Assembly: GCA_050084985.1 (NCBI GenBank)
Contig: JBITNC010000002.1
Span: 30,938,001-31,002,000, forward strand
DNA length: 64,000 nt
Source: Nageia nagi
Lineage: Eukaryota; Plantae; Pinophyta
Direction of reading: 5' to 3'
Of the stretch, positions 2,843-50,679 are shown piece after piece. Under the pieces are notes generated by a model. The model worked only from the letters and a program-made list of their open reading frames with translations. It ran no database searches and had not been told where the DNA came from. The number at the start of each line of letters is the position of its first letter. Position 1 is the first letter of the stretch. The position numbers and the translations under genes were made by a program.

Positions 2843-3158
2843 TGAGAGAACTATAATGTTCTATATTACTCATAAAAATGAGTTACATATATAGGCTTTG
2901 TGAGCCATTACAAGACAAGCTAAATGGTTGAGATGCAATATTCTCACACCATAACAAATATCACAAATAGCAGACCTACGTGAACTACAAGACAATAAGT
3001 GATGCCTATCCTAACAAATAGGCTAGGTATGGAATATGGTCAACATAGACCAAATATTCCTCACAAGCTAATATTAATACTTTAGGAAATACTCTTAATC
3101 CTAATTAATAAATCCTAATAACTTAGGACTTAGGGATATGTAGGGTATAATTCCAACA
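2843..3158 (-). repeat. 5' LTR of Copia element (~316 bp)
   Basis: TG...CA termini on the minus strand, 2 nt from the PBS. The partner LTR is not in the window. Confidence 0.75.
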
Positions 3159-3228
3159 GAAATATCCCACTGCTTCAATTGAACCTACTAGATGTGTTGA
3201 ACATATAAAAGAGAATGTTAAGGTTAGA

Positions 3229-3967
3229 ATGCTAGAATATGTAGATTCATCAGATGAATATAGAGCAAAAAAATGTATAAGAATAAGAAATAAAGGACAA
3301 ATTCATCGATTACAACTACCAAATGTTGATCCAGTTGAGCTACCAGATGAGAGTGTTGGTGATTTGCATTTAACACCTAATGTTGTACATTTATACAAGT
3401 CTACCTATGACCATAAGGCATACGGTGCATGGCCAATTGGAAAACCTTTTCCAAAAGCTTATGAACAATTCACTTATTATGGTCATTCATATATGATTAA
3501 ACCTTCTAATATACCTAATTTGGGTATTGGTTTGTTTATATTATCAAATGTACAAGTTCATCCATTCACTAAAAAGGACCATTAATGCCATTTTATGGGC
3601 CAATATGTAATGTTATATACTAGAGGATAATAACATCATATTTATGTAGTATGGATAAATATGGTATGTGTGGAAATACAACATCACAAATAAAAGATAC
3701 AAAATGTATGTACATTGATGGTCGACTAAAGATACATGGAAACATTGCAAGATATATGAACAACTCCAAAGGTATAGGCAGTCTAGCAAATTATGATTTT
3801 ATGGAATATGCAAATGATAAATATGAATTTATGCCTATAAAAATGAAAAGTTTATAGGTGTGGATCCTTTTGTAACTCTTAACCCTAGTGATGAGATCTT
3901 AGTGCATTACAACATTGATAAACATATTCTAGCATGTAAGAGATGTATGGATTTAGGAGATCCAAAT
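3229..3967 (+). pseudogene. SET-domain protein exon of CACTA copy A (frameshifted)
   Basis: Joined frames give IKPSNIPNLGIGLF...LMPFYGPI...YIDGRLKIHGNIARYMNNS...ANYDF...LNPSDEILVHYN, i.e. the SET motifs GxGLF, (RF)INxS and (G)xELxxxY. Confidence 0.8.
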
Positions 3968-4292
3968 GTATTTATTAAACCAAGATAAAAGTGTAAAGAG
4001 AAAAGAAATTATAGTAGATATTGAATAATGTTTGTAGTGCTAGGCATGTAGTTATGGCTTTAGACTATCTTATTTGCTATTTTATTGAAGATCCTTAAGG
4101 GATTTTATTTTTTGAAGAACATAATTATTGGAATTATTGATATATTTTACTTAAATTCATGTTATTTGTGTAATTTTTACTTAAACTTATGTACTTTTTA
4201 AACTTATTGACATATACTTATTAGATATTATGAATACTTGTTAAATTCAATTTTTTAACTATATTAATTATTTGTAATAAGTAATTTCATAG

Positions 4293-7200
4293 GCACATCA
4301 TACTACAGTAGATACACAAGATGAGTCAAATACAATATCTTATATGCTAACCTTACATCAAAAAAATATTCATTGGAAAAAAAGGAAGAAACTAAAGAAT
4401 ATATTAAGTAGGGATGAATATGTAGAATTCATTACAAATCCAAATCCAATGGCTCTTATTCAAATCATGAATTCAGATAGTGAAAATGATGAAAGACATT
4501 ATAACACTCATGATCAACAACAAAATGCAATGCATGATTTATTTCAATCAATCTATACAAATGAAGATGATACAAATGTAGGCATGAATGATAATCCTCA
4601 TGCACATGATGATGGAAGAGGAGGTGATTTAGAAAATGACAACATGTATGTTACTGCCAAAATACATTTATACAATGGAGCATTTATTTCCAAGTTGGAA
4701 GAGCTCCTACTTATCATGAATATAAAGGCCAAAAATGGATGGTCATATACAAGTGTCAATGATCTTCTGTAGTATGTATTTATTTTTATAATGTTTTTCA
4801 TTTTTTGTAAATTTATTGAATATTTTTCAAACTTTTTGAAAAATTATTTTCAATTGACAATGTCATACCTTCTTCATGTAGAAAAGTATGAAAATTTTTG
4901 AAGGATGTAGGGGTACCATGTGTTTCATACCATGCTTGTGTTAATGATTACATATTATATAGAGGATGATATGAAAAATTGAGTGTACATCCAAAGTATG
5001 GTGCAAATAGATATCGTCTAGGAACTATAGGAAAAATGTTCCTTTGAAGGTTGTTCACCATCTTCTAATTATCGATAAATTCATTAGAATATATAAGTGT
5101 GATTCATTTGCATAGTATATGGATTGGTATGCAAAAAATAGAAGTGAAGACAATGTATTATGAATTCCTAAAGATTCCAGAGCAATGAAACATATAGAAA
5201 ATATGTGGTTCGATAAATTTTGGGATGAACCTAAAAGTCTCAAGTTGGGTTTAGCAATTGATGGTGCCAATCCACATTCCATACAATCATCTAATTATTC
5301 AATATAGCATATTTTTAGAGTCAATTATAACATACCTCCATGGATGTCCTTTTTTATTTAATTTTAACTCTTTTAGTTCCTAGACCTAATCAAGTGAAAA
5401 ATATGGATATCTACCTTGAACCATTAATTGATGAACTAATGCAATTATGGAATGGAATTCAAAATTTTATTGACATAAGTAGACCCATCCAACAAAGATC
5501 ATTCACATTGTATGGCATACTATGTTGGACTATACATGATTATCCAAGTCTTAGTGTTTATTCAGTACGTATATATAATTTCTATTACATTTACATTTAT
5601 ATTAAAATATTTAATTTCTTAAAATTATATATAGTAATTATTATCTAATAAAAATGTATTATAGGGTTACGTACAGAAGGTTATCATGTTGATTCATGGT
5701 GTGCAAAAAATCTCATAGCAAGATATTCAGAACACTTGCAGAAGATGGAATACCTTGGCCACAAAAAATATTTACCATTAGATCATGAGTTTCAAAATAT
5801 GAAATCATAGTTTAATGGTCAAATTGATCACACAAAAATTCCAAATATGCATCTCCCGAGGATTGGTTGAAAAAGTAACAAGAAAGTGAAGAAATTTTTT
5901 GGATAAAATCCTTTGAGAAAGGTATTGTTGAAGATCTATAAGATGTTATTGTTAAAAAAGATGACTTACCTCAAGGTAAAATTTAATAAAATACTATATC
6001 AAATATTCTTTTTAACATCTCATTAATTCAATTATTTTATCAATTAAATGTTTACATTTGCATATGTTTTTAGATATGAACATATTATCCATATTTTATA
6101 ATATGGAATACTGGAAGGATTTATTAGTGACATATTTATTAGATCATATGCATATTGTTAATAATGTTGCATCTTATTTATACCAGTATACAAAAAGTAA
6201 AGAATTAGATAATATTCAATTGAGATATGACTTAAAGGATACCAAAACAAAATGTACCTTTTGGGTAACAAAATGCAAATGGAACAACAAATGCACCTAT
6301 TCTAACCTCATGGCTTATGACCAAAGATGAAGTGAACATTCTACATAATATTTTTAGAGCCATTAAAATACTAATGGAATATACATCATCTCTAAGAAAA
6401 GCATTCACAATTGATGGAAAAATGACAGGATTGAAGTCTCATGATTATCACAACTTATTGAAGGTATTCTCATATTATATGCATATCCAAAACCTTAAAA
6501 ATATTTATACTTATATATTTTTTATTCATCTATATTTGGATTAATATAAATTTTCTTATAGATTATTTTCCACTTGCAATTCATGGATGTATGACTTTAC
6601 CTACTGATTTAAGATATGCAATTGGTTGACTATCATTATTTATAAGGTATTTCATGCTATTTATGATACTATTTAATGAAAATATATAGTGCATTTATTG
6701 TTATTTTGTAGTTTCCAATATATTTTAAATACATATTATGATATTAATTGTATTTTCATAACTAGGTGGTTGACTTTAAAGGAAATACATGTCAATGAAA
6801 TCCCTAGATGGTGAAGAGAAATTGTGGAAATTGTTTGTAAATTTGAAAAAGAAATGCATGTTGCTTTTATGGATATATAAGTTAATATATTGATCCACCT
6901 AGTATATGATATTGAAATAGTAGGTGTTATAAGTACTAGAAGCATAGTTTTTATGGAAAGATTTTTGAAAGTACTTAAATGATTTGTTAGATAAAATTTA
7001 ATACCAGAAGGATCTATCTGTGAGGGATATATTATTCAACAATCTTTTTTTTATGTAAGTGATTTTCTATCTCAAATTCATGATTTAGCTCCAATGATAT
7101 GGTTACAAGCAAACAAAGACAATTATAAATTAGAAATGGAGGTTTTAGAAACAAATGAGAGATCATATGCTCTTAATAAAGGTACTAAATACATTTTAGA

Positions 7201-8160
7201 TAATAGTAATTTATAATAAGTACTATGTACATGCAATTTTAATTTAATTTAATCAATAATTACTAATAAGTTCATTTTATGTATTCAAAAAAATTATAGA
7301 TTGTGACATATATGAATATATAAACTATTTTATCACGATGAATATGGAGTTTTGTAAAGAATGAATTGAATTGTATGAAAGTAAAATAAATGCAACCTAG
7401 CACAACATATTTTGTTCTATAGTGAACATCCAAGGAGTACACCTATACCTTCATATGTAAGAGATGAAAATTGGCTAAAAGAGTGTCCAAGGTCATGGAT
7501 AAAGCAAGCAATTGAAGAGAAATTAGCTAAAGGTGTAGAAGAAAAAACCTATGAAGATGCTTTAAATATAGCTTATGGATGTAATTATGAGGTAATTATT
7601 CATTAATTCTTATGGACCTAAGTTTTTTTTATAAATAATATATATATAATACTTGTACCAATATAACATTTACATAAAAATATGTGCAAGCATTATCTTT
7701 TCCTGCAATGTGGGCATACGGTTTATGCTTCAAAATTGAAAAGAAAGATAGTAATAGAATGACCTTTGACTATGGAGTGATGGTTGATTTTGATTAAGCA
7801 AGTCATGGAAGTACAAAAGATAAAAACTTGATAGAAGGAAAAATACAATATGTTGGAAAAATTCAAGAAATCATATAATTGAATTTTAGATCATTCAAAT
7901 GTGTAGTATTCAAATGTAAATGGTTTGAAGGATTTGTAAATAGAAGATCCATATTTAATGATATACCTGGTGGTTATTATGCAATCGACTCTACATGATA
8001 TTTACCTCAAGAAAAAGAGCCATATGTTTTACCACAACATTATAGTCAAATATTTTTTGTCCATATTTACTAGATGAAAATATGTTGTTTGTAATTGATT
8101 GTGATCCGAGAGGGAAACATGTTGTACATATTCTTGATGAAAATGGTAACAATTGTGATT
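4293..8160 (+). pseudogene. CACTA TnpD/TNP2 transposase (Transposase_21, DUF4218, DUF4216), intron-containing, decayed
   Basis: GWSYTSVNDLL; HACVNDYILYRG; LGLAIDGANP; NYNIPPWM; MDIYLEPLIDELMQLWNG; WTIHDYP; DHMHI; GLKSHDYH; FMERFLKVLK..PEGSI.EGY; FKCKWF..EPYVLP. Confidence 0.92.
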
Positions 8161-9499
8161 AAAATATTATATGTATATTTGAGTAATTAAACATTATATA
8201 TATTGATATCTTTATTGATTTGAGGTTGACTTGCATATGAATTTGAATTATAGTATTTTTTTGAATATTTTGCAATTTTTAGATTACTTCCAATTAATTA
8301 CTCATTAATATATTACGCATATTACATGTATTTTCATGTTTAAGATGTTCAATCAATTCCATATGTAATAATTTCAAATGTGAAAGTGTATATACATGCT
8401 TGTGGTGGTCAATTTAATATTAGCATACCATGTTAGGGTTCTCTGCTTAGTCTTTCACTTGAGATATCATTATTTTCTTGTGTCAAAATGGGAACTAGGA
8501 AGTAGAGATCATAGGATGGACATGAAATATTCTTCATCAATTCTATGTAACATTAGCATGGTAGACCATACAGTAAAATGTATATTATGAAAATGCATAA
8601 TTCAAAATGTTAAGATTTACTTGATCAAACATCAACTAAAAATTCAACTAATGCATCAATCAAAATGTCAAAAATAACTTGAAAAATACATCAATACATG
8701 TATCTTGTAATGTGCCAATCAAGGCATCAACATACAAATAAAATGTAGTTTTGATACAGATTTGCAATCCCCAATGCTTAAAGAGTCAAAGCATCAAAGA
8801 AATTTTTGTTAACACATTAAATGATGCAAACTAAGTAAAATTCAATAGCAAATTTATTTGTATATTTTTAAATTATGTTATTCTAAATATCATCACTTAT
8901 AAATATTCTTATAAAAATATCAATTCCCAACCTTTCAGAAATGGATCAATGGTGACCTAAAATGGATTGTCGATGGTCCTCTTTTAGGGGAATTTGATAA
9001 TGAAATTTAAATTGCTATTTAAAAAAACTAATAAAAATATATAACAAAATTAAAATCAGCATTCACCTAAGATAACACAATCAAATTTATATTGATTCCT
9101 CCCAATGTGTAAGTACATTCATTTTAACATCTCTTCTTCATTATGGGACCCAAATAGGGATTACAAATTAGTGTGAATATGGAATACATTATCATAATAT
9201 TAAATGGTCCTTCTCCAACTTGCAATCACCTTGAATCAGATCTAAATCTTTAATTATTAAGTTTATGCTTCAACAATACCATAGACGAATCAACACTACC
9301 TCTCAACAACCTGCAATAATCTCGAAATGAATTACCTTCAAAATAGAATGGAAGAAGAAAATATTTTAGCCCCTAAAATTACCCTTGATTTTTCACATTC
9401 CAAGAAAACTACCATAAGAAATGGACCATTGTTAGTCCTCATGTGCTCACAAATGGATGACTAGCGATTCACTTTTTTCACAGTTATCTCACCAAATTT

Positions 9500-12369: not shown

Positions 12370-12650
12370 AACAAGATAGCTTGCATGATCAAGAAGGTCA
12401 ATAATGCATATATAATTATTCATCCTATGAATAATGTAGTAAGAGTCCCTCATGCTATTAAAGTATTTATAGCCCTCATCCATTATTCCTACATGGAAAC
12501 ATGCAAGTAGAATACATACAAAGGTTATGTTGTTAGGGTTGGCTCCCAAGTGCTTGATCAAATGAAAGAGTTTGAGGGCATCCTTGTTGTAGCCATGGAT
12601 TTCATATCCTCCAACCATTGCATTCTATGAAACTATGTTTGCATCATGTC
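12370..12650 (-). pseudogene. PLS-class PPR gene fragment
   Basis: ORF 12325..12618 (MVGGYEIHG..DALKLF..PNNITFVCILLAC.HVG..DEG.KYFNSM..IIDLL); duplicate of ~13230-13510. Confidence 0.85.
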
Positions 12651-12809
12651 TACTAAAGAACTCATAACCACAACATGTGATAGAAATATTCTTTTAAAGA
12701 GTCTTTTATGTATTAAAAAACCTTGTTACAAATTTCCCATTTTGGGGTATTTTTTAAAAAGGTTAGGAAAGGTGATTTTATAATGTTCTAATGCTACTAT
12801 TGTTTGTTG

Positions 12810-13510
12810 CATTCCATGAAACTATGTTTGCATCATGCATCTTAGCAAACAATTCTTACATCAGGTTATTGTACTCTTTCTCATTTTCCACAATTCATAA
12901 GTATTTGTGGGTGTGATCTGTCTCCTACAAGAAAATCATTTACCCTTTTGTGAACTTCAATTCAACTACATCCAAGTGCCTTCTTGATTCCTCAATCTTT
13001 AATAAATGTCCTTACTCCTTCATCATCATCATAGTTTCCCACTTCAACATAAATATTTGAAACAAGGACATAAGATGGAGCATATTTAGTCTCCAACAAA
13101 AATAATATTCTTGCTACAAATCCCACAATTCCTACATTCTTATGTGATCTAAAAGCACTAAGGATAAATACCCATACACACAATTCAAGCTTTTTGGGCA
13201 TATTGACAATAACTTTCATAGCTTCCTCAAGATAACTTGCATGAAAAAGAATTTCAACAATGCATGTATAATTATTCATCCTACAAACAATGCAGTAAGA
13301 GTACCTTATGCTATTAAAGTATTTACAGCCCTCATGTACTATTTCTTCATGGTAGCATGCAAGTAGAAAACATATAAAGATTATGTTTTTAGGGTTGGTT
13401 CCCAAGTGCTTCATCAAATGAAAGAGTTTAAGGGCATACTTATTGTAGCCATGAATTTCATATCCTCCAACCATTGCATTTTATAAAATTGTGTTTGTAT
13501 CATGTCTATT
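12810..13510 (-). pseudogene. PLS-E/E+ class PPR gene fragment
   Basis: ORF 12992..13474 with terminal PPR motifs and an E domain (VW..ILSA.RSHKN..YVLVSNIY), continuing through stops as GIKKALGCS*IEV...FLVGDRSHPQ. Confidence 0.88.
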
Positions 13511-14679
13511 AGGGAATTCATAACCACATGTGATAGAAATACACTTTTAATGAGTCTTTGATGTATTTATCAACCATTTTGCAAATTTTCCAATTTAAAA
13601 TCAATAATTTATTTAATTAAAACAAACATGGTTCCAAGTTCATTCTTTGAATATGTCTCATTATTTTGAATTGCAGGGAATTTGCAGTCATTGATTTGAA
13701 GTATCTTATTAAAAAATCTCATCTCACTATGGTATATGCTAGATACTACACATTTACTTTTTTTATTTTATGGGGGTAGTACAAGTATATGTTGTTGTTT
13801 TGTTGTGATTTGTTGACTTAAATACTAATACTTGTAATGTTAATCATATGCCCTCATAGAAAACACCGTAAATATGAGGAATTTAGGAGCATGCATCAAA
13901 TACATGATCATAGAGAGCTTTACTTAGATGGTGGAGGAGAATGGATTGCTACCAAGAAGATTGATAGGATATAATAATTTTTCTTTATTTTTAAGTGTGC
14001 ATTAATCAATTAAGTTCAACAGGGTGATAAGTAGAGGTTAAATGAGCATAGGAACTGATATTATGAATGTATTGCATCAATTCCTCCTCTACTAAGAAGT
14101 AGGAGGCCAATAGATGGCATATGTAAGCCATCCACATATAATCAAAAGAAATATGAGGCATAAAATAAATATATAAATAAGGTGCTTTAGAGACAATATA
14201 ATAATGAACATCATAGAGTTGTTGAAGGTATCTATTTTCAATATGATGTCCATGGTAAAAATAATTTACCAAAACCAATCATGGATGAACTACAAAAAAG
14301 ATGGAAGAATATAATTCTGAGGATAGAAAAAAAATTATTGGATCATTTAAAATAACAATTCACAAAGGGATATGTTAACTTTATTATAAAGGGGAAGGCA
14401 AGTGATTATATTTCATTTACATTATAATTTATGTTCTTGTATTGTTGTTTTATGTTATCCAACAAGTATGTAGTAATTTCTCATAGGTTGATGCAAATTT
14501 TGCAATATCCATAGATAAAATACTAAGAATTTTTAATCATGTTTTTAAAAAGTGTTGTTATTATACAAATAAATAATATTATTGATTATTAACATCATAT
14601 ATTATCCACATCATGTATAAGATTTGTCAAATGTACAAGGATCTTTACATCTGAATGATTTCGATGGTTAACATTCAAG

Positions 14680-19029: not shown

Positions 19030-19852
19030 GAAAAATATCCAAAATACCCTTGTAATTGAATGTAATATAAAAAATACCCTTAAATTTTTACAAATATCAA
19101 AAATACCCCTATTACTTTTAATCTCCCATTCCATTCAAACATAAAAAAAAATAAATTTTAGAAAATATATCAAGGGATGCAGCAAAATGGAGGAGGATGA
19201 GATATCAAGCATTGCTGCTACTGGAAAATATGTTGAAGAATACAATAAAATGGAGTTTACTTAATGAAATATTTATCAGCTAAAGATATCCTTTCTTTCA
19301 CTCTTTACAATCAAATGTTCTATTAGACTCTAATTTCGATCCCTAGGGCTTGGAATCGATTGGAGAATTTATTTTTTCTTCCTACATCCCCTACTGCTAA
19401 GAAGAGGTAATTTCAAAATAGAAGCATAGATTTGAGGTAATCAACACCAAGGATGTGGTCCAACATAGCGACTTGTTGCATCTCTACCATGGCATGCTAC
19501 CCTTTGTTAGAACATTCAAGACATTCTTCTCAACTTTAGGTGATTCCTTCATATCATCCCATAGCTTCAAGGCTTCATTGCTTGAAATTGCAAATTTATG
19601 GGTGAAAAAATGTTGGCCTACACCACCATTGAGATATGAATATAGGTATTTTCCATGCAAATCATGAACATTCAACTTTCAAGCAATCTTTCCTTGCAAC
19701 CTTGCCGAAATTGAGTTACACCCAAATAAAAAGAGAGCATGCACAAAGGTTGTAGAAAAAATATTGTATTTGAGGGGTATTTGGATATTTATGTAAAAAT
19801 AGGGGTATTTTTTATATTACATCAAATTTGGGGGGTATTTTAGATATTTTTC
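19030..19852. mobile_element. Non-autonomous MULE/MITE (~820 bp), Pack-MULE candidate
   Basis: ~85-bp inverted repeats: 19030-19115 (gaaaaatatccaaaataccct..tgtaatataaaaaataccct) and 19768-19852. Possible 9-bp TSD AAAAATAAT at 19019-19027 and 19853-19861, offset by 2 nt on the left. Confidence 0.8.
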
Positions 19853-19869
19853 AAAAATAATTATCTTTC

Positions 19870-20390
19870 AATGTTTGAATACTCATGTGTGAAGATTCCT
19901 CAAAATAGTTTGCATGAATGAGAAGGTCAATAATGCATGTATAATTATTCATTCTAGGAATAATTATTCATTCATGCTATTAAAGTATTTACAATCCTTT
20001 GAATGGAAAAATTACCATTTATAATTATTCATTTTCGAAAAAATTATTTTTCAATGGAAAAAACTATCTTTTAATGTTTGAATACTCATGTTTGAAGCTT
20101 CCTCAAGATAGTCTACAGGAATGATAAGGTCTACAATGCATGCATATATTATTCATTCCAATAATAATGCAATACAATTCATTCATGAAAGTATTTACGA
20201 CCCTCATACACTAGGACTACATGGTTGCATGCAAGTAGAACACATACAAAGTTTATGTTGTTAGGGTTGGTTCCTCAGTGCTTCATCAAATCAAATAGTT
20301 TAGTGGAATCCTTGATGTAGCCATGATTTGCTCATATCCTCTAAGAATTCAAGTTCATGAAATTATAACTATATCATGCATATTACATGG
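19870..20390 (-). pseudogene. PPR fragments (partly duplicated), same family as 12.4-13.5 kb
   Basis: gcatgcaagtagaacacatacaaagtttatgttgttagggttggttcc and catgtataattattcat match the 12.4-13.4 kb PPR pieces. Confidence 0.75.
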
Positions 20391-27731: not shown

Positions 27732-29428
27732 ATTAGGGGTTAGGGTTTAAAGGTTAGGGGTTAAGCAGTAGGGTTAGGTTAGGGTTTGGGGTAAGGGTTA
27801 GGGATTTGGGTTAGGGGTTAGGATAAGGGGTTAAGGGTTAAGGTTAAGGTTTGGGTTTAGGGTATGGGGTTAGGGTTTGGGGTAAAGACCCATGGGTCAA
27901 TCTATGGGTTGGTCCACTTAGTGGTTAGGGTAAGGGTTAAGGTAAGGGGTCAAGGGTTAGGGTTTGGAGTTATGGTTAAGCTTATGGTTACGATTTAAGG
28001 GTTAAGGTTAGGGTTTATATTTGGGTTGAGGTTAGGATTTTAGGTTTGGGGTTAGGATTAGGGTCTAACAGTTAAGGTTTAAGGGTTGGGGGTTATAGTT
28101 AGGTTTTAAGGGTTAAAAGTTTGGGTTATGGGTTAATGTTATGATTAAGGTAAGGTATTAAGCATTAGGGGTTTTAGGTAAGGATTAATGGTTTGGTTTG
28201 GTGGTTAGTGTTCAGGTTAAGGTAAGGAGTTAAGGGCTAGGGTTAAGATTAAGGTTAAGGTTTAGGTTTGGGGTAAGGGGTTAAGGGTTAGGGTTAAGGT
28301 AAGGGGTTAAGGGTTATAGTTAGGGTTTGGGTTATGGTTTGGGTAAGGGTTAGGCATTAAGATAAGGGGTTAGGCACTAAGATAAGGGGTTAAGGATTAG
28401 GGCTAGGGTTTGGGTAAGGGTTAGGGGTTAGGGTAAGGGTTAAATTAAGGTAATGGGCTAAGGATTAGGATTAAGGTTTAGAGTTATGGTTAGGCTTATG
28501 GTTATGATTTAAGGGTTAGGGTTAGGGTTTGGATTAGGGGTTAAGGTTAGCAATTTGGGTTAAAGGGTAGAGGTTAGGCTTATAGGTTTAGGTTAAAGGT
28601 TAGGGTTTGGGCTTAGGGTTCAAGGGTTTTCATTTAAGGGTTAGGGTTTAAGGATTATGGGTTAGAGTTAGGTTTTAAGGGTTAAGGGTTAGGGTAAGGG
28701 GTTAAGGATTAGGGTTAAGGTAAGGGGTTAAGGGTTTAGGGTTAAGATTAAGGTTAGGGTTTGGTATTAGGTTTATGGTTTAGGATAAGGTTTAGGGGTT
28801 AGGTTAAGGGTTAAGGGTTAAGGTTAAGAGAAGGGTTATGGGTTAGGAGTTAAGGTAAGGGGTTAAGGGTTAGGGTTAAGGTAAGTGATGAAGGATTAGC
28901 GTTATAGTAAAGATTAGGATTAAGGTTAAGGTTTGGGGTAAGGTTTAGGGATTAAGATAAGGGGTTAAGGGTTAAGGTTAATGTAGGGATTAAGGGTTAG
29001 GGTTAATGTAGGGATTAAGGGTTAAGATTAGGGTTCGAGGTTATAGTTAGGCTTATGGTTACAATTTAAATATTAAACTTTAGGTTTGGGATAAGGTTTT
29101 GGGTTTGGGTTAGGGGTTTAAGTTAGAGGTTAGTGTTTAGGGTTAAGGTTCAAGGGTTAAGGTTTAAGGGTTGGCAGTTATAGTTAAGGTTTAAGGGTTA
29201 GGGTAAATGGTTAAAGGCTAAGGTTAAGGTAAGGGGTTAAGGGTTAGAGTTAGGCTTTATGATTATGGTTAGGGTTATGATTACAATTTAGGGGTTATGG
29301 TTAGGGTTAATGGTAAGGGTTAAGTGTTTGGGGTTAGGCATTTAGGATTAAGAGTTTGGGTTAAGGGTTTGAATTAGGGGCTAGGGTTAGGGGTTAGGGT
29401 TTATGGGTTAAGGTTTAAGGGTTGGGAT
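27732..29428 (+). repeat. Degenerate interstitial telomere-like array (TTAGGG/TTAAGG/TTTAGGG variants, G-rich on +), ~1.7 kb
   Basis: Continuous ggttagggtt/ggttaaggg variants. Confidence 0.95.
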
Positions 29429-30179
29429 TATAATAGCATTTTTTAATAATTAAAAAATTATAAATATTATAATTTTAATAATACAGTATTTAATAAAAAA
29501 AATTAGAAATTAATAATTAAAAAATTATATAATAAAAATTAAATACTATTAATAATTACAAAATAAATAAATAAAATTAAAAATTAGATAAATTTATAAA
29601 TACTTATGTATAAATAATTTTTTAATTTTAAAAATATTCTAAATAATGAGTAATGAAATTCCTAATTTTCTAAAATTTGATAGTAGGTGAGTTAGTGGCT
29701 TACATCACTATGTCCAAGTGAACTGATGTTTTCTTAGATGAGGAAGACATGCCTTATATTCATCAAAATACGATGGATGTATCTTTAGATGATGATGAGA
29801 CTTTTTATATTTCTCAATTGAGGATAGATGTTTCATTAGATGAGGATGAGATGGAGATGCCACCAAATTGTCACCAAATTATCAAAGGAGAAGTACATAT
29901 GATGTATATGTCATTAATTGACACATAAATTTCATTAGATTGTAGAAATGTAAGATCATTTAAATTTTTACTTTGATGATATTATGTGAAATAGTTAACT
30001 TAATATTATGATTAATATTAAAGTAAGGATCAACATCCCATTGAATAAGGATGGATATTGATGAAGATGATGATCATGAGGTAATTAGCATGAAATTTTG
30101 ATTTTATTTTAAAATTTTATCAAATTAAATTAAAATCATTATATTAAAATAAAATAAAATTCATCATATGAAGAGAGAA

Positions 30180-30892
30180 TAAGATGAAGAGGGATGAACA
30201 TGCAAAAGAACAATACTTCAAAGAGTAGTGGCATTTATCATTATAAATGAAGAGCCAGTTGATCTACCATTAGAGAGTATTGGTGACTATTCTTTGTTAG
30301 ATCATCTATAACATTTATATGATGATACATATGATCATGAGGTATAAGGTGCATGGCCAATCGATAGACCTTTTCAATAAAACTTTTGATAAATTCAGTT
30401 ATTATGGTTATTCATACATGATCAAACCTTCAAAAATTTTTGTGGTATTGGCATGGGTTTATAATATTTATTATGCATGTTTTTCATGGAATAGTACCAC
30501 CAACATTAATGTCATTTTGTGGACCAATTTACAAACAAGGTATTTACAAATAATTATCAAGGTATATGTTCAGTATGTTTAAATATGACCTTTGCAGAAA
30601 TGATCATTCAACAGAAGATTGAGTATAATTTACTTACATTGATGGTCGACCAAAAATACATGAAAACATAACAGGATGCATAAACAACACCAAAGGCACC
30701 ACACACATACCAAATTATGAATTTGTGTAATTTAAAAATGATTAAGAAGATTTTATGTATAAAAGAATGTGTAGTTATGTAGGTGTAGTTCCTATTAGAT
30801 ATCTTTCACCTCATGATGAGTTATGGATCCATTATAATTACACAAGACCTACTCAAAAACATAAGGAACATTTAGAGTTAGGAGATCAAAAT
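30180..30892 (+). pseudogene. SET-domain protein exon of CACTA copy B (frameshifted)
   Basis: YSYMIKPSKI/CGIGMGL...LMSFCGPIY...YIDGRPKIHENITGCINNTKG..PNYEF...YVGVVPIRYLSPHDELWIHYNY; colinear with copy A. Confidence 0.78.
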
Positions 30893-31084
30893 GTATGAAA
30901 TATAGATATATTTACTATTTAAAGATTGTATGAAATATGGATATTATTACTATTTGATGATTGTATTGACATTCTTACTATTTGATATTTATATGGATGT
31001 ATAAAATTGATAGTATAGATGTTTATTTTTTTAACTATTTTAATGGTTAATTTGTACATAAAAACTAATTAATTAATTCTATAA

Positions 31085-34000
31085 GCACATGAATATGAAA
31101 GAATGACTTATACACTATTTCATCAAAAAAATATAAGTAGGAGAAAAAGGAAGTGACTACACAATGTATTAAGAGTTGATGCAATGAACAATTCCTGAAA
31201 GACCCAAATCCAATAGCTCTTGTTCCTATAGTCATGGATTTAGTTACTGATAATGATAAAAGAGAGAATAATCCTCATCAAGAACAAAGTGTAATTAATG
31301 ATTTACTTCGATCAGTCTATCCAAATGCATATGATGATGAAGACATGAATGATACTTATCATACACATGATAATGTAAGAGATGGTGATTATGAAAATAA
31401 TAGTATGTATAGTGCTTCCAAAACTCTTTTATATGAAGGAGCACATTAATCCAAGTTATAGATGGCCCTACTTTTCATTAATTTAAAAGCTATTTATGGA
31501 TGGTCAAATAAAAGTTTCACTGCTCTTATGAAGTATTTAATATTTTTTATTTTCCAATATTTTAATTTCTATCAATTTATATATTTAATTTTTATCATTA
31601 TTTAATAATAGTTTTATTGCTTTGTATGGTATTATAGGTTACTAAAAAAAAGGGTGCTTACAAGAGACAATACCATCCCTCCTTGCAGAAAGGCATGCAA
31701 AATTTTGAAGGATGTAGAGGTAGAGTGTCATTCATACAATGCTCCTATTAATGACTGCATATTCTATAGAGGATCATATAGAAAATTAACTGTATGTTCA
31801 AAATGTGGTGTAAATATACACCATTCAAAAATGATATGGAATAATATTCCTCAAGAGAATGTTTGTAGCTTTCTAATCATTCCTAGGTTTTATAGAATAT
31901 TTTGGTGTAAGTAAATTGTACAATATATGGATTGGCATGTAAAAAATAGAAGTGAATAAGGTGTATTACAAATTCTTGTAGATTGTAAAATAATGAAATA
32001 TATATAAAATATGTGCTCGATAAATTCTAGGATGAACTTAGGAGTGTCATATTGGTTTTAGCAATTGATGGTGTCAATCCATTTTTCATACTATCATCTA
32101 ATTATTCATTGTGACCTAATGTTATAGTCAATTATAACATAGCTCCATGGATGTCCATAAAAAAAGAACATTTAGTATTAACTCTCTTAGTTCCTAGACC
32201 ACATTAGGTGAAAAATATGGATGTTTACATTGAACCATTGATTGATGAATTGATGAAATTGTGGAATGGAATTCAAAGTGTGATTGATACAAGTACACAT
32301 ATCCAACAAAGGTCATTTACATTATGTGGTATCCTATGTTGGACTGTACATGATTATCCAAGCCTTACTATTTTTTCATGTATGTATATATAAAATTGTT
32401 ATATCATAAATATTTGATTTTCTTTTATCATATGATAATGTATTCTCTAATAAAAATTATTGCAAGTCTTCATATAAAAGGGTCCACAACATGCAAAAAA
32501 TCTCACATCAATATATATTTGAAACACTTGCAGAAGATGGAATACCTTGGCAATAGAAAATATTTGTCAATGGAACACCCTTTTCAAAATTTGAAATCAC
32601 AATTTATGGTGAGGTTGACTACACCCCCACTCCCAATTACACATCTCCTATGGATTGGTGGGTAAAGTACCAAGAAAGTGTAGAAAAATATCAAGAAAGT
32701 GTAGAAAATTATCAGGAAAGAGCCTTTTATGAAAGTACTATTGTAAACCTAGATGATGTTATTGTTTGCAAATATGATTTACTCGAAAGTAAAATTTAAC
32801 AAAATATATGAATATATTTATTTATTTGAAAAAATGCATGTTTGTAATATTTAAATTTCATTATTTTATCAATTAAATGATTTATTTTATGCATGTTTTC
32901 AAGCATGAAGAGACTATCAATACGGTATAAAATTCCATACTAGAAGGACTTATTAGTGGAACATTTATTGAATCTTATGCATATTGCAAAGAATGTTGCA
33001 TCTTATTTGTACCAGACCTATCAATATATAATAAGCAAAGAATAAAATAATCCTAGTCTGAGAAATGATTTAAAAGATACCAATACAAAGTGTTCTTTAT
33101 AGAGAACTCATAATTTGCACTTGATTATGACCAAAGAAATGATCATTCTACACAATGTTGTTCAAACCACTAAAACACCAAGTGGATATGGATCATCTTT
33201 AAGAAGAGCATTTACTATTGATGGTAAAATGACAAGATTAAAGTCTCATGATTACCACAAATTCTGAAAGATATTCTCATATTACATGTTTATAGAAATC
33301 TTTAAATTCATATTACTATATATTTTATTCAAAATATAGTGATTAATATCTGTTGTTCAAAACTTTTGATGAATTTATTTATAGAATATTTTTCCACTAG
33401 CAATTTGTAGATGTGTGAGTTTACCTTATGATTTAAGACATGCAACTGGTCGACTATCAATGTTTATAATGTATTATGCCATGTTTATATACTAGTATTA
33501 TTCTATGATGAAAATAACATGTGTTTATTGTTGTGTTCAAAGTTTAGCATACATTTTGACATTTTCATAAATATGTGCTTAACTTCAAAGGAGGTACATA
33601 TGCATGAAATAAAAATGTGAGGTAAAGAAATTGTTGAAATAGTTAGTAAATTTGAAAAAGAAATACATGTTGCTCTTATGGACATACAAGTGCACTTGTT
33701 GATCCATCTAATAGATGATATTGAAATAACAAGCATTATAAATGGTAGAAATATTTTTTATGGAGAGATTTTTGAAAGTGCTAAAAGCATTTGTTAGACA
33801 AAAATCATGACTATAAGGATCTATAGGTGAGGGATACATTGTACACGAATCTAAATTTAATGCAAGTTAATATATTTCTCAAATTCATAATTTTTCCCAA
33901 AAGATGTGTAATACATACGACTTAGACAAATTAGAATAGGAGGTTTTAGAAATAAATGGGATAATATATTCTCTTGTAGGTACGTCTAACAATATTTGAG

Positions 34001-34956
34001 ATTTTAGTAATTTATAATAGTATATATGTACATGCATTTTGAATTTAATTTAATCAATTGTTACTAACGAGTATATATGATGATATTCTAATTTTGCAAA
34101 TTATGATCAATATGAATCTATAAATCAGTTTATCATGATAAAAATGGAATGTTGTAAAGTGTGGATTGAAGTGTACAATAGTAAAAAATGTAATTCCAAG
34201 AGAACATGCCTTGTTTCATAGTGTAAATACAAGGGTTTCTCTACCTTCACATCTAAGAGTGGAATATTGGTCAAAAGAGTGTACAAGGTTATGGATGAAA
34301 CAAGTAATTGAAGAGAAACAAAGAAGAGAGGAAAGGATAGATGAAGATGCATACAGTATAGCTATTGGATGCAATAAAATGGTAATTATTATTTTATTTA
34401 TTTGCATATAAGTTTTTACATTTTTATAAGACTTTCATGGCTAATTAATATAAACATAATGATTGTACCAATAACATTTTTATGTAAATATGTGCAAGCA
34501 TTGTATTTCCCTGCAATGTGGGCATATGATCAACACTTCAAAAATGACACAAATGATGAAAGAAGGACATTTGGTTATGGAGTGATGGTTGAATTTGACA
34601 AAGCAAGTTGTGCAAGTACAAAAGATACAAAATAGATAGAAGGAAAATTACAATATATTGAAAAATTTGAAGAAAGTATTCAATTGGATTATAGATCATT
34701 CCAGTGTGTAGTATTTAAATGTTAATGATTTGAAGCATTTAATATAAAAACAACCTTATACGATGAACCTAGTGGTTATCGTGCCATTGACTCCACATGA
34801 TATTTAGCTAAAGATAAATAGCCTTATATTTTACCACAACATTGTAGTTAAATATTTTTCATTCCAGATGTATTGGATAAGAAATAGTGGTTTGTAATTA
34901 GTTGTGAACTAAGAGGAAAATATATTGTATGTCTTATTGATGAAGATGATAATTAA
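31085..34956 (+). pseudogene. CACTA TnpD/TNP2 transposase, intron-containing, decayed
   Basis: GWSNKSFTALM; NDCIFYRG..CSKCG; GLAIDGVNPF; MDVYIEPLIDELMKLWNG; WTVHDYP; LKSHDYH; MDIQVHLLIHL; FPAMWAY; PYILPQHC. Confidence 0.92.
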
Positions 34957-35183
34957 AGATTGTATTGTTGAACTATAGAAATATGTTTTAATGTTATCTT
35001 ATGACACATTAAATATATCTAACCATCAATATATTTTTATTTTGAATTTAAATGAGTTACTTGAATTTTATGACTGTATGTACCATTATGAAATACCTAC
35101 TACATTTTTTGTGATTACATTTTTTTTAGAGATTACTTTAAATTTTTAAATTTAATGTATTTGAAGTTAATACATTTAAATTT

Positions 35184-35751
35184 AAACCCTAAACCAGTAA
35201 AAACCTTAAACCCTTAAAACCCTAAGGGCCTAAACTCTAAACCCAAAATCCTAATCCCTAAAATCTAAAACCCTAAAATCCTAAAATTTTAAACCCTAAA
35301 TCTCTCAAACCTAAACCCTTAAAACCTTAAACCCTAAATCTCTCAAACCTAAACCCTTAAAACCTTAAACCCTAATCCCTAAACACTTAAATCCTAAAAC
35401 CTTAAACCATAAACCTTAAAGCTTAAACCCCTAAAAGATAAAACTCTAAGCCCTTAAAGCCCTAAACCCTAGAACCCTAAACCTTAATAAACCCTAAAAC
35501 CTTAGAACCCTAAACCCTAATAAACCCTAAGTCCCTATAACCTTAAACACTAGCAAACCTTAAACCCTAAATCCCTAAAACCTTAAACCCCTAAAACCCT
35601 AAACCCTAAATCCTAAAACCTTAAACCCCTAAAACCCCCAAACCTTACAACCCTAAACCCTTAAAACCCTAAAACCCTAAAACCCTAAACCCTACAACCT
35701 TAAACCCTTAAAACCCTAAACCCCTAAACTCTTAAAAACCTAAACCCCAAA
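35184..35751 (-). repeat. Degenerate telomere-like array (CCCTAAA variants on +), ~570 bp
   Basis: aaaccctaaa/aaaccttaaa variants, including a 38-bp tandem duplication at ~35291-35366. Confidence 0.95.
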
Positions 35752-36191
35752 CTATTGTAATTTTTTAAAAACACCCATAAATTTTTACATCAACATCTAA
35801 ACAAACCAAAATAGTTTAATAGTGGGATAAAACATCATACCTAACATCATGTTGTGTCACATTTGGCATCATGTGGCATGATATTTAGCATCACATGGCT
35901 TTATATTACATTAGATTTAAAGACATAATGTGTCAAAAAAAATATCAATATGGGTTAATGTTAACATCATGCAATGATAAATTTAACATCAAATTGTGTC
36001 ATAACTATCGACAATGTGTCACATTGATAGAACCTCTATGTTGGATTTAGCATCATACATGGCATCAAATACAACCTCACTTAAAGCAAGAAAAATCAAT
36101 GACATAAAATAGATACTATTTACATTATAAGTGTTTCCCAAGTATTATTGATGCATGCCCTTACAGTATACTAAGTTTGCCTTGTAGTGAT

Positions 36192-36404: not shown

Positions 36405-37243
36405 ATAAGTCTCCATTGTTGATACGACATTTAGCATCAACTATGGCATCAGTATACAAATCAAAATTTAAAAACAATTACACAACATTTTGACACTTAC
36501 ACTGATGCAAAATATAATTAATTTAATAGTGAATAAACACATTTTTTTCTTAAAACAAAATATACCTAAATAGGGAAACGAAAAGGTCATCACATGAAAG
36601 TCAATAATACTCACATAGCAAGAAAGAAAAAAGCAAGGGCTAAATGATGGCCAATAATATTTGCATAGCAAGAAAAAGTGAAAAGCTAAGTAAAATTAAC
36701 ATGGTTTAAGAAAAGTTAATATTTAAGAGTGAGTCTACAAACAACAATTTTTCAAAGAGAGCTACATACATGCTCTAAAGAGTACCTTTGATTAAGATAT
36801 CACATGGTCGTGTTAACAATTATGATAATATTTCCACACCAAATCAATAGCATTATAACTCAATAAATATGTTAGGTTTCTTAAAATAACTTTCAACTCC
36901 AAGGCACTAAATTTAGTAGGCTTTAGGACAATGAAATAAAATGAAGACAAACACACCAAGGCAAGTCTCCCATAAATGAAATAGATGAGCAATACTTGAA
37001 AAAAATGATTACATGTAAGGCTTGCACTGGCATTTCCACTTCAACATAATCAAAGAAAACATAAAATTTAACAAATTCAAAATAAGCTAATAACTTCAAG
37101 TAAAGAGATGCTAAAGCAAAATAATTGATACTAAAACATTTGGGAACTCTAGAAGAGAACCTCAAAGAAAATCACTATGAAAGTGGAAGAAAGGGTAGAA
37201 GGAAATCTACACCACTAATGGTATATGAGTCAAATTGAACAGA

Positions 37244-38891
37244 TGTATATACATACATAGTCCAACAGCCTAGCAACTTCTCAGTGCATATTATCCTTAC
37301 TTATCTATAGGATGAGTGTTTCAGCAAGTTTTTGAATAGTTTTGATGGGAAAATATACTACGTATAGTATTTTTTGGAGTATAAGAGAGAGTCATGTTAG
37401 CAAAATAAAGATTCTTCTAAAATCGAACCTCAGAAGTAATGATGTTAGTAGTTAGTGTTAAAATTTCTACAATGGCTAAGTGTTCTGAGGCATAAAAGAG
37501 AGTGATGCCAGCAAAATAGAGATTCTTCTGAAATCGAACCTTGGGAGTAATGATGTCAACAATTAGTGTTAAAAGTTCCATGATGGCTAAATGTTTCGAT
37601 GCATAAAATAGAGTGTATGTTAGCAGAATAGATATTCTTCTAAAATCAAACCTTAGGAGTAATGACATCAATAGGTAGTGTTAAAAGTTTCACACCAACC
37701 AAGTGTTCTAAGCCATAAAAGAAGTGATGTCAATAGAGTAGAGGCTCTTCTAAAATTGGACCTCAAGAGTAGTGACATTAGCAGGTAGTGTTAAAAGTTT
37801 TGCGATGGCTAAATTAGCTAATTTTAGAGCACAAAAGAATGTAACATCAGCAAAATAGAGTGAATCCCATTTTAGCCAAAAGAATGGGTCCGAAGAAGGA
37901 TGATGTCACAAATAAGATCAAAATCTTTTGAATTTATTTATTTCATCTCACAAAGGCACAAAAGGAGGTGACATTTCAAATTAGATGGTTCAAAAATTGA
38001 ATATGTTAGATGTAACAAATAGGATCTCCACCCAAGCAAAACTTCACTAAAGAACTCTAAAGCATGTGCCAAAGATCAAGAAGGCTCCAGAATAACCACT
38101 AGAAAATGAAGAAACTTTGAAATCACCATAGTTAGTCAAAGAATCTTTCATAATTGTAATACAAGTTCAAATAACACCCAGGAAGCATGTCCATCATGGT
38201 TTAAAGGTCATTATAGTTTAGACTTTTTAATTTTAGGAATAAAATGACATGTGGTAGAATAGTTAGCTATTTATTAAAAGAAGGCCAAAATATTTGGGTC
38301 ATTTTGTAACTGTTTTGTTTCAATCTTTTTGCAACCTCTCTAGTTTAGTATAAATTAGTGGAAGGCAAGGAAAAGGGGTTGGAATCCCTAGTATTACCCC
38401 TTGTATTTGTTTTTGAATACCTATCGTTCTATTAGTTATACAATGCCATCTTGACCTTTCTTGTCCAACGCTTAGTGTTATTATTTTAATCTAGTTATAT
38501 TGTGGCAAGTAATGGATATTTCTTAAATAATAACAAGTTGTTGGTATAATTGTGTCTACTTATATGGAAGAGTTAAGCTGAAGAATAATTTAGAGAATGA
38601 AAGCTTACACTGTGGTTGTTACACTAGATTCTTGCCAAGGTTTCACACTATGTGAAAGCCTATGCTGAACTGTGATTCGCCCCTTTTGCTTTACTCTTAT
38701 TTCCTATCTCTTTTGTTTCATTTCTTGCACTCAATCCTCTTTCATTTCTTTTTTGTTATTTTCTCTTTTCATCTACCTAAATAGATAAGGAACCAATCTA
38801 CTTCAGATATCAGGTTACTATGTTAGCTTGTTCATGATATATTATGATTGTATTGCTCATGGGTGCAGCTATTACACAATTTTCATCAATA
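37244..38891 (+). repeat. 5' LTR
   Basis: Starts TGTATATACATACATAGTCCAAC, ends catcaa(t)a; alignable along its length to 48392-50061. Confidence 0.92.
37382..37860 (+). repeat. ~111-bp tandem repeat (4 copies plus a partial) inside the 5' LTR
   Basis: Unit aaaagagagtgatg.cagca.aatagagattcttctaaaatcgaacc...tagtgttaaaagtt..atggctaagtgttc; same array at ~48530-49005. Confidence 0.9.
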
Positions 38892-38901
38892 GTATATCTT
38901 T

Positions 38902-48312: not shown

Positions 48313-48391
48313 AAGCTTGGTCTCTCTCCTTTTTTACTAAGTTTTGCGTTGGGTCCAAAATGTCTTATATGAAAAGCAAATGTCACCAAAA

Positions 48392-50061: not shown

Positions 50062-50679
50062 ACATAACTAAGCAAGATGAAGCATGACATGCAATAAAAA
50101 TGCTTGCATATGAAGATAGACCACCACATCAAATGAACAAAGAAAGCAAGGTGAAGAATTGGAGCATTCTCAATATGTGAGACTTGCAATAAGAAGGAAG
50201 CTATGTTCCATGGGGACATGTAACAACCCTCAAAATCCCTATATCCTTATTTCGACCACTTTGGGAATGGGGGGACAGGTACAAAACATTTCATCATCAT
50301 CCCACTCCAATGGAAACTCAACCAAAACGTTTCCTTAATCAAAGGGTACACCTAGCCGTCCTAGAATAGGTGGGAGGCTAGTTTTTCTTTTTTTTAACTA
50401 TTAAATGATTTTCGCATATGTTGTCTTAAGGTTTGATGTGCTATGCAACTCCTGAATCTTTTAAATTTTTAGTAGAAATAATATTTTTGAAAGGACTTGG
50501 TTTTGATATCTTGTACATGCAAGAAATATTCACAAGAATCAGCACTACTACAAAATTGTGAACATGTTGCGCAAGCTAGAAAATATAAAATTTCAATGCA
50601 TGCAATGAGCCTATCAATTGCAAGTTGCCATTTGCTAATCTATAACATAAACAAACAAGTTATCAAGTATGAGATATTG

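Follow-up and report, generated by a model that had tools for sequence, protein, structure and literature searches.

Transposons that carry chromatin-modifying genes of their own are rare, and they bear on how mobile elements escape from, or manage, silencing by the host. In the maize CACTA element En/Spm, epigenetic control involves TnpA, a second, DNA-binding protein that attaches to the subterminal repeats and helps silenced Spm to become demethylated and active again. SET genes have been described in HarbingerS elements, Phytophthora MuDR elements, and Helitrons (Kojima and Jurka 2014, Repbase Reports, as cited in PMC12730594 and 10.1101/2025.02.11.637652). Within the CACTA/EnSpm superfamily, Plavaka elements of Bostrychia moritziana carry an accessory gene, PAG2, with a Pfam SET domain (bioRxiv 10.1101/2025.02.11.637652). 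In Arabidopsis, the accessory protein VANC of the Mutator-like VANDAL elements alters the epigenetic state of its element (Hosaka et al. 2017, as cited in PMC12730594). Among SET domains themselves, loss of the histidine in motif III is common to the PR type; some PRDM proteins are active methyltransferases without the canonical residues, and others are apparently binding modules (PMC4146578).

The window analyzed here is a stretch of 64,000 nt from Nageia nagi (GCA_050084985.1, contig JBITNC010000002.1, positions 30,938,001-31,002,000, forward strand), and positions below are counted from its first letter. We consider it probable that two copies (A and B) of one CACTA family with a TnpD-type (Transposase_21) transposase lie in the window, both old, non-functional, and decayed through methylation, and that their common ancestor carried a divergent PR/SET-like gene of about 250 codons upstream of the transposase, encoding a stand-alone accessory protein in intact master elements.

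Organization of the two element copies

Copy A (3229-8149) and copy B (about 30150-34952) were colinear and 68-71% identical; in both, the Transposase_21 pieces follow the SET-like module on the same strand after about 0.2-0.35 kb (Table 1). Two segments were aligned by blastn: the SET-like module (A 3321-3971 against B 30245-30896, 68.5% identity) and the transposase region (A 4339-8149 against B 31107-34952, 71.3% identity over 3990 columns). No blastn alignment between the copies ran past the ends of these SET and TnpD segments, so the conserved region stops directly after TnpD and the flanks are not shared. The spacers between the two genes reached only 47% identity in a global alignment, compared with 67% for the SET-like module, and gave no blastn match in copy A (3989-4338).

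Table 1. Features of copies A and B and of the arrays around copy B, in positions of the window
Feature	Position	Strand	Basis and remarks
Decayed SET/PR-like gene, copy A	3229-3988	+	About 250 codons; family profile, phmmer, alignment to intact relatives
Spacer between SET-like gene and transposase region, copy A	3989-4338		22% GC (AT-rich); cannot be aligned with the shorter spacer of copy B
Decayed TnpD-type transposase region (Transposase_21), copy A	4339-8149	+	PF02992; split by introns, stops, and frameshifts
G-rich telomere-like array, left of copy B	27733-29423		TRF; units of 6, 7, and 13 bp, TTAGGG/TTTAGGG-like
Decayed SET/PR-like gene, copy B	30150-30898	+	Three-frame translations, family profile
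Decayed TnpD-type transposase region, copy B	31107-34952	+	PF02992; blastn colinearity with copy A
C-rich telomere-like array, right of copy B	35182-35752		TRF; inverted relative to the left array (pairs I3-I23)

Both copies carry a CACTA transposase of the TnpD type, as judged by matches to Transposase_21 (PF02992). In copy A these fell at 5340-5645 (E 1.6e-14; 54.1 bits against a cut-off of 28.6) and 5185-5304 (E 5e-5), and in copy B at 32208-32390 (E 6.6e-13; 48.8 bits) and 32378-32662 (E 4e-6). A scan of 17 ORF pieces of the window, taken from both copies, gave no match to a TnpA-type gene (Transposase_24).

The same gene, in the same position and on the same strand, is present in two diverged copies with different flanks, as expected of a transposon-borne accessory gene. 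An initial annotation, made from the letters of the window, had claimed that the module belongs to the family and is not a one-off capture; its shared position in the two diverged copies places it in the ancestral element. A host gene that merely adjoins a transposon was excluded by the two copies having different flanks.

The outer ends of the element were sought around copy B. The left and right arrays there form inverted-repeat pairs, and copy A has no such arrays; those of copy B may be where the subterminal repeats of the element lie. Outside the arrays the search turned up no terminal inverted repeat of CACTA type, and around copy B no matching CACTA termini with a 3-bp target-site duplication; the best flank-to-flank inverted alignment there was weak, and CACTACAA sites occurred at chance level (5 against 2.2 expected). 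Both copies may be truncated. Since terminal inverted repeats and target-site duplications were not found, it is the colinearity of A and B alone that places the SET-like gene inside the element.

The SET-like module in the window

All strings that the initial annotation had quoted were located in the sequence. The frame of copy A is broken into three pieces (3151/3229-3582, 3576-3854, and 3857-3985) that end at a stop at 3986-3988, the lesions being two frameshifts (near 3575-3585 and near 3855) and an in-frame TAG at 3621-3623. IKPSNIPNLGIGLF lies in the ORF at 3229-3585, MPFYGPI in the frame piece from 3576, YIDG..GNIARYMNNS..AN at 3624-3854, and DEILVHYN at 3857-3985. The module reported for copy B was recovered at about 30150-30898 with its motifs (YIDGRPKIHENITGCINNT and DELWIHYNY) in the same order as in copy A, spread over at least three frame changes and interrupted by about 10 in-frame stops before the terminal stop at 30896-30898. 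Three residue-level observations of the initial annotation also held: NHS is replaced by NNS in copy A and NNT in copy B, the C-terminal Tyr of motif IV is retained in both (DEILVHYN and DELWIHYN), and pre- and post-SET Cys clusters are absent.

For detection of related sequence, a family profile was built from four intact relatives of 198-272 aa. It matched copy A at 3151-3582 (E 3.8e-21) and 3624-3854 (E 1.6e-12), with a weak but colinear match at 3827-3985 (E 0.5), and copy B at 30629-30727 (E 7.9e-7) and 30746-30895 (E 2.5e-4), with further weaker colinear pieces at 30301-30619; nothing significant was found elsewhere in the 64-kb window. Chance resemblance of the motifs was excluded by these E-values. 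A phmmer search with copy A 3151-3582 returned 24 proteins out of 1.84 billion (best E 3e-25), and P0002, a B-type relative, begins MKREQDEEG as copy B does.

Scanned against Pfam, the SET pieces of the window themselves did not match SET, and phmmer of the copy A piece 3624-3854 against solved structures gave no match. Because of this the SET assignment made in the initial annotation comes through intact relatives, two of which score above the Pfam SET gathering threshold, and finds zero Pfam matches in the window's pieces taken alone. At the level of sequence comparison, the modules of copies A and B are shown to be homologous to a family whose intact members pass Pfam SET.

Identity of the intact relatives

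Intact relatives are all ORFs of 198-340 aa, each with its own stop. With the Pfam SET (PF00856) gathering cut-off at 22.4 bits, P0009 scored 28.2 bits over profile positions 2-104 of 105 and P0007 scored 25.5 bits, that is, 3-6 bits above the cut-off. SET was the sole Pfam family to recur, with matches at E ≤0.1 in 18 of 137 family members. In a language-model search, SET clusters made up 24 of the 30 neighbors of P0007 and 20 of the 30 neighbors of P0009, the top named neighbor being a Streptophyta cluster of 263-aa proteins labeled 'SET domain-containing protein'. Searches of a word index with P0009 and P0007 found almost nothing beyond the two queries.

The motifs of the family read GxG, FxGPxY, GNxAxFxN(S/N)S, and ELxxxY, and cysteine clusters before and after the SET region are lacking here too. 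For motif I, the GxG occurs as LGIGLF in copy A, GLGLY in P0009, and GIGLF in P0007; in the largest subfamily the first Gly is Asn in 106 of 129 sequences, and the second is kept in 103 of 129. Motif III (canonically RFINHSCxPN) retains its Asn in 54 of 66 sequences and departs from the Asn-His pair at the His, which is found in none of the 67 sequences covering the position (Ser in 44, Ile in 6, Asn in 4, and others). The Tyr of motif IV is present in 24 of the 26 sequences that reach it. The family looks PR/SET-like by these motifs, having lost the NHS histidine and kept the motif IV Tyr. Intact ORFs survive in three or more subfamilies sharing only about 30% identity, with invariant residues at SET positions (the Gly-Asn of motif III and the Tyr of motif IV), and this conservation of ORF and motifs across such distances argues for past selection, as far as the sequences can tell.

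Structural comparison was less informative. Against solved structures, the four-relative profile found the PR domain of PRDM12 (3ep0) as its best match, weakly (E 0.0027) and in two colinear stretches, whereas a wider profile of 10 relatives found no SET or PR chain and only a spurious homing-endonuclease match. PF21549 (PRDM2_PR) gave no match at E up to 1. AlphaFold2, run once on 10 and once on 137 sequences, ended at mean pLDDT values of 36.1 and 36.8, with no confident model, and a SET fold with its pseudoknot is thus unconfirmed by structure prediction. The lack of a confident model, the failure of the wider profile to find a solved SET chain, and the missing NHS histidine could speak for a resemblance to SET that arose by chance or belongs to another fold. 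Such a reading is highly improbable, given that P0009 and P0007 both exceed the curated Pfam cut-off, the former over nearly the whole profile, that 16 further members match SET, that the language-model neighbors are SET clusters, that the best solved-structure match is itself a PR domain, and that motifs I, III (in part), and IV stand in the correct order and spacing.

The ends of these ORFs also bear on whether the gene was ever separate from the transposase. In copies A and B the two genes are close and on the same strand, a conserved AAT|GTAT immediately precedes the SET stop in each, and En/Spm proteins are produced by alternative splicing; on these grounds, splicing from a donor site toward the end of the SET ORF could have fused that ORF to the transposase in frame, so that a mobile element would encode a SETMAR-like protein. 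We regard this as very unlikely: both copies and all intact relatives stop soon after a conserved LGxP tail as stand-alone products of 198-340 aa, conservation between A and B does not extend to the spacer, and no long fusion appeared among the 24 matches in 1.84 billion proteins (gene calls made without splicing). Since each intact relative has its own stop, the stand-alone accessory protein of the favored reading is inferred from them.

Decay, selection, and copy number

Both copies are dead, copy A through its two frameshifts and one stop and copy B through its approximately 10 stops, and CpG observed/expected is about 0.15. The dN/dS comparison proposed with the initial annotation was carried out as pN/pS between the copies. 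For the SET-like module it was 0.86 (0.65-1.18), with out-of-frame controls of 0.85 and 0.78, so that no frame-specific constraint is visible; the power is low, most of TnpD being equally neutral. The Transposase_21 core gave 0.42 against controls of 0.75 and 0.66, and all TnpD pieces pooled gave 0.75 against controls of 0.67 and 0.78. The divergence between A and B is mostly post-insertion decay. Because most of TnpD is neutral by the same measure, pN/pS between these copies cannot tell a functional accessory gene from cargo.

GC content was 0.30 in the SET-like module and 0.27 in TnpD, a similarity that gives no compositional sign of recent capture. Thousands of contigs at least 80% alike, all short (up to about 350 bp), covered 30 of 30 bins of positions 3100-8200 in four DNA runs, two of which come from other organisms or from air metagenome DNA; none of the contigs is long enough to bridge SET and TnpD. 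Since all 30 bins were covered, repetition extends to the SET part as it does to the remainder of the 5-kb stretch. No RNA holder of the element sequence was found. The one other locus retrieved, which is metagenomic, belongs to another SET subfamily, and was seen in three near-identical versions (L001-L003), carries an intact 339-codon SET ORF with no TnpD within 3.8 kb; 5 nonsynonymous changes and no synonymous ones separate these versions.

Several of these results would suit a gene that was only ever passive cargo, that is, a host or foreign SET-like gene captured by the ancestral CACTA through Pack-CACTA-type transduplication and copied along without serving the element. Plant CACTAs are well known to capture genes, the SET-like module lacks the frame-specific constraint of which the transposase core keeps some, a related SET ORF exists without a neighboring TnpD, and the Streptophyta cluster of 263-aa SET proteins could be the host source. 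Against this, a whole ORF with start and stop, not a mere fragment, occupies the same place in both copies. The 139 family hits, none of which came from NCBI or UniRef, are mostly fragments and in many cases singletons of their cluster, resembling repeat debris and unlike a conserved host gene. The selection test is also a weak witness for cargo when pooled TnpD (0.75) equals its own controls. We judge capture without function to be unlikely, while a good deal more plausible than either the fusion or a non-SET origin.

Discussion

In the favored reading, the ancestral element had a small gene without introns (about 250 codons) that preceded the transposase gene on the same strand by 0.2-0.35 kb and whose product would be a minimal, divergent SET-domain protein of PR/SET-like type. 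Intact master elements would express it as a stand-alone accessory protein. With AdoMet bound, this protein would methylate a lysine of some chromatin protein or, alternatively, it might dock onto histone tails or partner proteins in the vicinity of the element, as catalytically silent PR domains do; in either case the element would be more readily expressed or transposed. The protein may take the place of the second, TnpA-type protein of CACTA elements, for which no gene was found among the pieces scanned.

A more specific proposal is that intact masters encode an active, histidine-less PR/SET lysine methyltransferase that replaces TnpA and marks the chromatin of its own element, for example with an H3K4- or H3K36-type mark like that of PRDM9, sustaining transcription and transposase access against silencing by H3K9me2 and DNA methylation. 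We hold this to be doubtful. If true, an active PR/SET enzyme on a CACTA element would be a plant, transposon-borne counterpart of the animal PR-domain enzymes. The initial annotation had read the module as a self-encoded chromatin modifier, possibly for anti-silencing. Homology to the SET family and carriage by the ancestral element are supported; the role as a chromatin modifier for anti-silencing, which we only infer, finds no support in dead, CpG-depleted copies, in a SET pN/pS equal to its controls, in a motif III without the NHS histidine, or in a related ORF without TnpD.

Copies A and B are only fossils; what gives them value is the family they point to, not the two loci themselves. 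A high-copy seed-plant CACTA family with a SET/PR-like gene would add the best-studied superfamily of plant DNA transposons to those with chromatin-modifying genes, would offer a concrete protein in which AdoMet binding, substrate, and effect on silencing can be addressed, and would show a PR-like, histidine-less SET lineage outside animals. To our knowledge, PRDM genes are regarded as animal-specific. The likeness to their PR domains lies in a SET relationship without the H/RxxNHxC histidine, an SSIPxxGLGxF-type start, an FGPY-type second motif, and an ELLVWY-type end; the difference is that PRDMs are zinc-finger host genes, whereas the Nageia nagi gene is a plant transposon gene without zinc fingers.

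Among transposon-encoded proteins with an epigenetic role, TnpA is likewise a second CACTA protein besides TnpD, and the SET-like gene seems to replace a TnpA-type gene here; TnpA, however, is no SET protein, and its gene lies around the TnpD ORFs and downstream of them. VANC is the model for the anti-silencing reading, and differs, as far as the citing account describes it, in having no SET domain and acting through sequence-specific binding and loss of DNA methylation. SETMAR, the primate fusion of a SET gene with the Hsmar1 mariner transposase, also unites SET and transposase in one locus, but as an immobile host gene that captured a transposase, whereas here a mobile family carries SET, most likely as a separate ORF. 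HarbingerS, Phytophthora MuDR, and the SET-capturing Helitrons are set apart, by the descriptions given in the citing papers, as belonging to other superfamilies (PIF/Harbinger, Mutator, and Helitron) and other hosts.

The novelty suggested for CACTA elements narrows in view of Plavaka, since SET was already known there, in the CACTA/EnSpm superfamily of a red alga; for Transposase_21 CACTAs of seed plants, no report of a SET gene was found in the literature. Plavaka is likewise a CACTA-superfamily DNA transposon with a SET accessory gene beside its transposase, but it is a giant of 17-19 kb from another transposase branch, whose PAG2 combines a DNA methylase domain with SET and is accompanied by two further accessory genes. 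The Nageia nagi element instead pairs a plant TnpD (Transposase_21) with one minimal, stand-alone SET/PR-like ORF, and by homology copies A and B add a seed-plant case to the few transposons with a chromatin-enzyme-like gene.

Two colinear copies of one element

The AT-rich window (GC 25-40%) was found to contain two copies of one element, A (3229-8149) and B (~30150-34952), which are colinear and both on the + strand. By blastn, A 3321-3971 aligned to B 30245-30896 at 68.5% identity and A 4339-8149 to B 31107-34952 at 71.3% identity, with no A/B similarity past the ends of these alignments; repeat families D10-D20 recurred at a constant A-B offset of ~26,807 bp. The initial annotation had described a methyltransferase-like SET module upstream of TnpD, and all of the strings it quoted are present in the sequence. 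Its placement of the module at the matching position in copy B was borne out by the blastn colinearity, with the same order and strand. Because gene order, strand and approximate spacing are common to A and B despite their unrelated flanks, the SET gene must have been in their common ancestor element; within the window it belongs to the transposon, as the annotation had held in calling it a family component. Copies A and B are fossil members of one CACTA family; its ancestral element had a PR/SET-like gene upstream of TnpD (features are collected in the table below).

Features of the two copies, their surroundings and a related locus
Feature	Position	Strand	Details
Copy A SET module	3151/3229-3582, 3576-3854, 3857-3985	+	Three frame pieces, then stop
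Copy B SET module	~30150-30898	+	At least three frame changes, about ten in-frame stops
Copy A Transposase_21	5340-5645	+	Pfam E 1.6e-14
Copy B Transposase_21	32208-32390	+	Pfam E 6.6e-13
Telomere-like array left of copy B	27733-29423		Inverted relative to right array
Telomere-like array right of copy B	35182-35752		Inverted relative to left array
Long direct repeats	37243-38899, 48391-50069		81-89% identity, ~11,146 bp apart
111 bp tandem repeat within each long direct repeat	37381-37799, 48534-48959		~3.8 copies
Other dispersed repeats	12372-12671, 13228-13527, 19855-20329		83-88% identity
Inverted pair	19030-19102, 19780-19852
Intact SET ORF of related locus	3852-4871 (of L002)		339 codons

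The SET module of copy A carries two frameshifts, and an in-frame TAG (3621-3623) is its single premature stop. In both copies (3229-8149 and 30150-34952) GC is 27-30% and CpG o/e 0.13-0.17, which is read as long-term cytosine methylation followed by deamination; such depletion implies that A and B succumbed to silencing instead of evading it.

Logan contigs from four DNA runs (two coded organisms from a single study, a further organism, plus an air metagenome) were placed on 3100-8200 at ≥80% likeness, in 30 bins. Between 7,600 and 31,000 short contigs, of ~200-350 bp, none spanning SET and TnpD and with a depth not usable to rank parts, covered 30 of 30 bins, SET bins included, so the whole stretch including SET is a high-copy repeat in those samples. 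Contigs aligned to copy A differed from it mainly by transitions, in keeping with the same methylation-deamination signature. With 3100-8200 compared to runs X1, X9, X12 and others, parts of it were also present in air metagenomes of several studies; a suggested origin is pollen or plant debris carried in the air from the source species or its relatives. Plant-type telomere-like repeats, together with this airborne occurrence, would suit a plant pollinated by wind.

Assignment of the module to the SET family

When scanned alone, the window's own pieces gave no Pfam SET match, and SET piece 3624-3854 matched no solved structure. HMMER searching of 1.84 billion representative proteins with piece 3151-3582 returned 24 proteins (best 3e-25). 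Two intact relatives, P0009 (272 aa; 28.2 bits, profile positions 2-104 of 105) and P0007 (261 aa; 25.5 bits), exceeded the curated Pfam SET cut-off of 22.4 bits and aligned colinearly with the window's pieces. A profile from four intact relatives, run against all stop-to-stop pieces of the window in six frames, matched copy A (E 3.8e-21 and 1.6e-12) and copy B (E 7.9e-7 and 2.5e-4), with weaker, also colinear, pieces in between and no significant match in the rest of the window. The proposed identity of the module as SET was in this way supported at the level of profiles, and the assignment can be considered sound on that evidence.

Profile searching of a 5.8-billion-protein collection gave 139 family members, nearly all short fragments and many, by the cluster sizes of the first matches, in one-sequence clusters; where named by their source they are 'hypothetical protein', and none is an NCBI or UniRef entry. 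SET was the sole recurring Pfam family (18 of 137 members scanned individually). Among language-model neighbours, SET clusters accounted for 24 of 30 for P0007 and 20 of 30 for P0009, the top named neighbour being a Streptophyta cluster labelled 'SET domain-containing protein' (263 aa). AlphaFold2 gave no confident model (pLDDT 36-37) with either a 10-sequence or a 137-sequence alignment.

Across the family the GLF core of motif I is kept, with the full GxG in copy A, P0007 and P0009, and is followed by an FxGPxY motif. Motif III reads GNxAGFxN-S-(S/C), with Asn in 54 of 66 sequences and the canonical His in 0 of 67; the replacement of NHS reported earlier was seen as NNS in copy A and NNT in copy B. 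The motif IV Tyr (ELxxxY), also reported as retained, is present in both window copies and in 24 of 26 sequences. With a profile built from the four most intact relatives, the best solved-structure match was the PRDM12 PR domain (3ep0), a weak match (E 0.0027) in two colinear stretches, an SSIPxxGLGxF start and an ...ELLVWY end; the broader family profile matched no SET chain among solved structures. PR domains are a SET branch without the H/RxxNHxC residues, and some PRDMs are reported active despite this; others seem to act as binding modules (PMC4146578). Loss of the His therefore lowers, but does not abolish, the case for catalysis. In one SET subfamily (P0040, P0051, P0078) the N-terminus is extended by ~150 residues, which include a CxCxxC motif (VVCGCSKCKG) as well as a basic stretch. 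The window's copies lack this extension, which may be a small addition for binding metal or DNA.

Selection and a related locus

Copies A and B were compared codon by codon (MAFFT alignment, Nei-Gojobori counts, 95% bootstrap), with the two wrong frames as controls. In the coding frame, pN/pS was 0.86 (0.65-1.18) for SET (controls 0.85 and 0.78), 0.75 for all TnpD ORF pieces (0.67 and 0.78) and 0.42 (0.25-0.72) for the Transposase_21 core (0.75 and 0.66). As in-frame values approximate the controls outside the core, A and B have diverged mostly by neutral decay that followed insertion; constraint is picked up solely in the best-conserved portion of the transposase, and for SET the test says nothing either way. 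Open frames of 198-340 aa persist in subfamilies only ~30% identical, whose invariant residues fall on SET motif positions, and these point indirectly to past selection on the SET family.

Another SET subfamily is represented by one locus in three metagenome samples (L001-L003, 98-99% identity), where the ORF is intact and no TnpD similarity was found within 3.8 kb on either side. This is one data point against SET-TnpD linkage beyond the window. The ORF is the only long one in ~6.4 kb of AT-rich sequence (L002). A stop and a frameshift already interrupt its N-terminal extension (in relatives, ELDLFYDTP..CGCSKCKG), and the three versions differ by five nonsynonymous and no synonymous changes, small numbers consistent with neutrality. 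The main rival explanation, that the SET gene is passive cargo from gene capture, is considered rather unlikely.

Element architecture and possible function

No CACTA termini were found. The arrays flanking copy B consist of degenerate TTAGGG/TTTAGGG-type units of 6, 7, 13 and 15 bp, and none occurs at copy A. These arrays may represent the element's subterminal repeats, in a layout that would suit CACTA, or alternatively a palindromic satellite in which B is embedded. Elsewhere in the window, the long direct repeats resemble the LTR pair of a large LTR retrotransposon, and the other dispersed repeats and the inverted pair are probably parts of a MULE-type element.

The A/B conserved region stops right after TnpD, and no TnpA-type (Transposase_24) match was obtained among the pieces scanned. 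In both copies and all intact relatives, the SET ORF closes with a stop that follows a conserved LGxP tail, and the SET-TnpD spacer is unconserved (47% identity; 367 bp in A versus 211 bp in B), so that a stand-alone SET protein is the simplest reading. An in-frame splice of the SET ORF to the transposase has also been proposed.

In intact master elements, the SET gene would encode a small nuclear accessory protein, which may have taken the place of a TnpA-type second protein. This protein would methylate lysine on chromatin proteins or, alternatively, bind histone tails or partners in the manner of silent PR domains; either activity would favour expression or transposition of the element. An active, element-serving methyltransferase is judged improbable.

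Comparison with known transposon-borne SET genes

SET genes have been described in HarbingerS and Phytophthora MuDR families (Kojima & Jurka 2014, as cited in PMC12730594), and Helitron captures of SET genes are on record. The initial annotation knew of no precedent in CACTA elements. This stands for seed-plant Transposase_21 CACTAs, for which full-text searching found no report (Repbase Reports and most subscription journals being outside its scope), but not for the CACTA/EnSpm superfamily, in which Plavaka of the red alga Bostrychia encodes PAG2, with a DNA methylase domain and a SET domain (bioRxiv 10.1101/2025.02.11.637652). Transposon-borne SET genes are thus already known and, with the absence of earlier reports not proven, the seed-plant Transposase_21 CACTA case is an addition to them.
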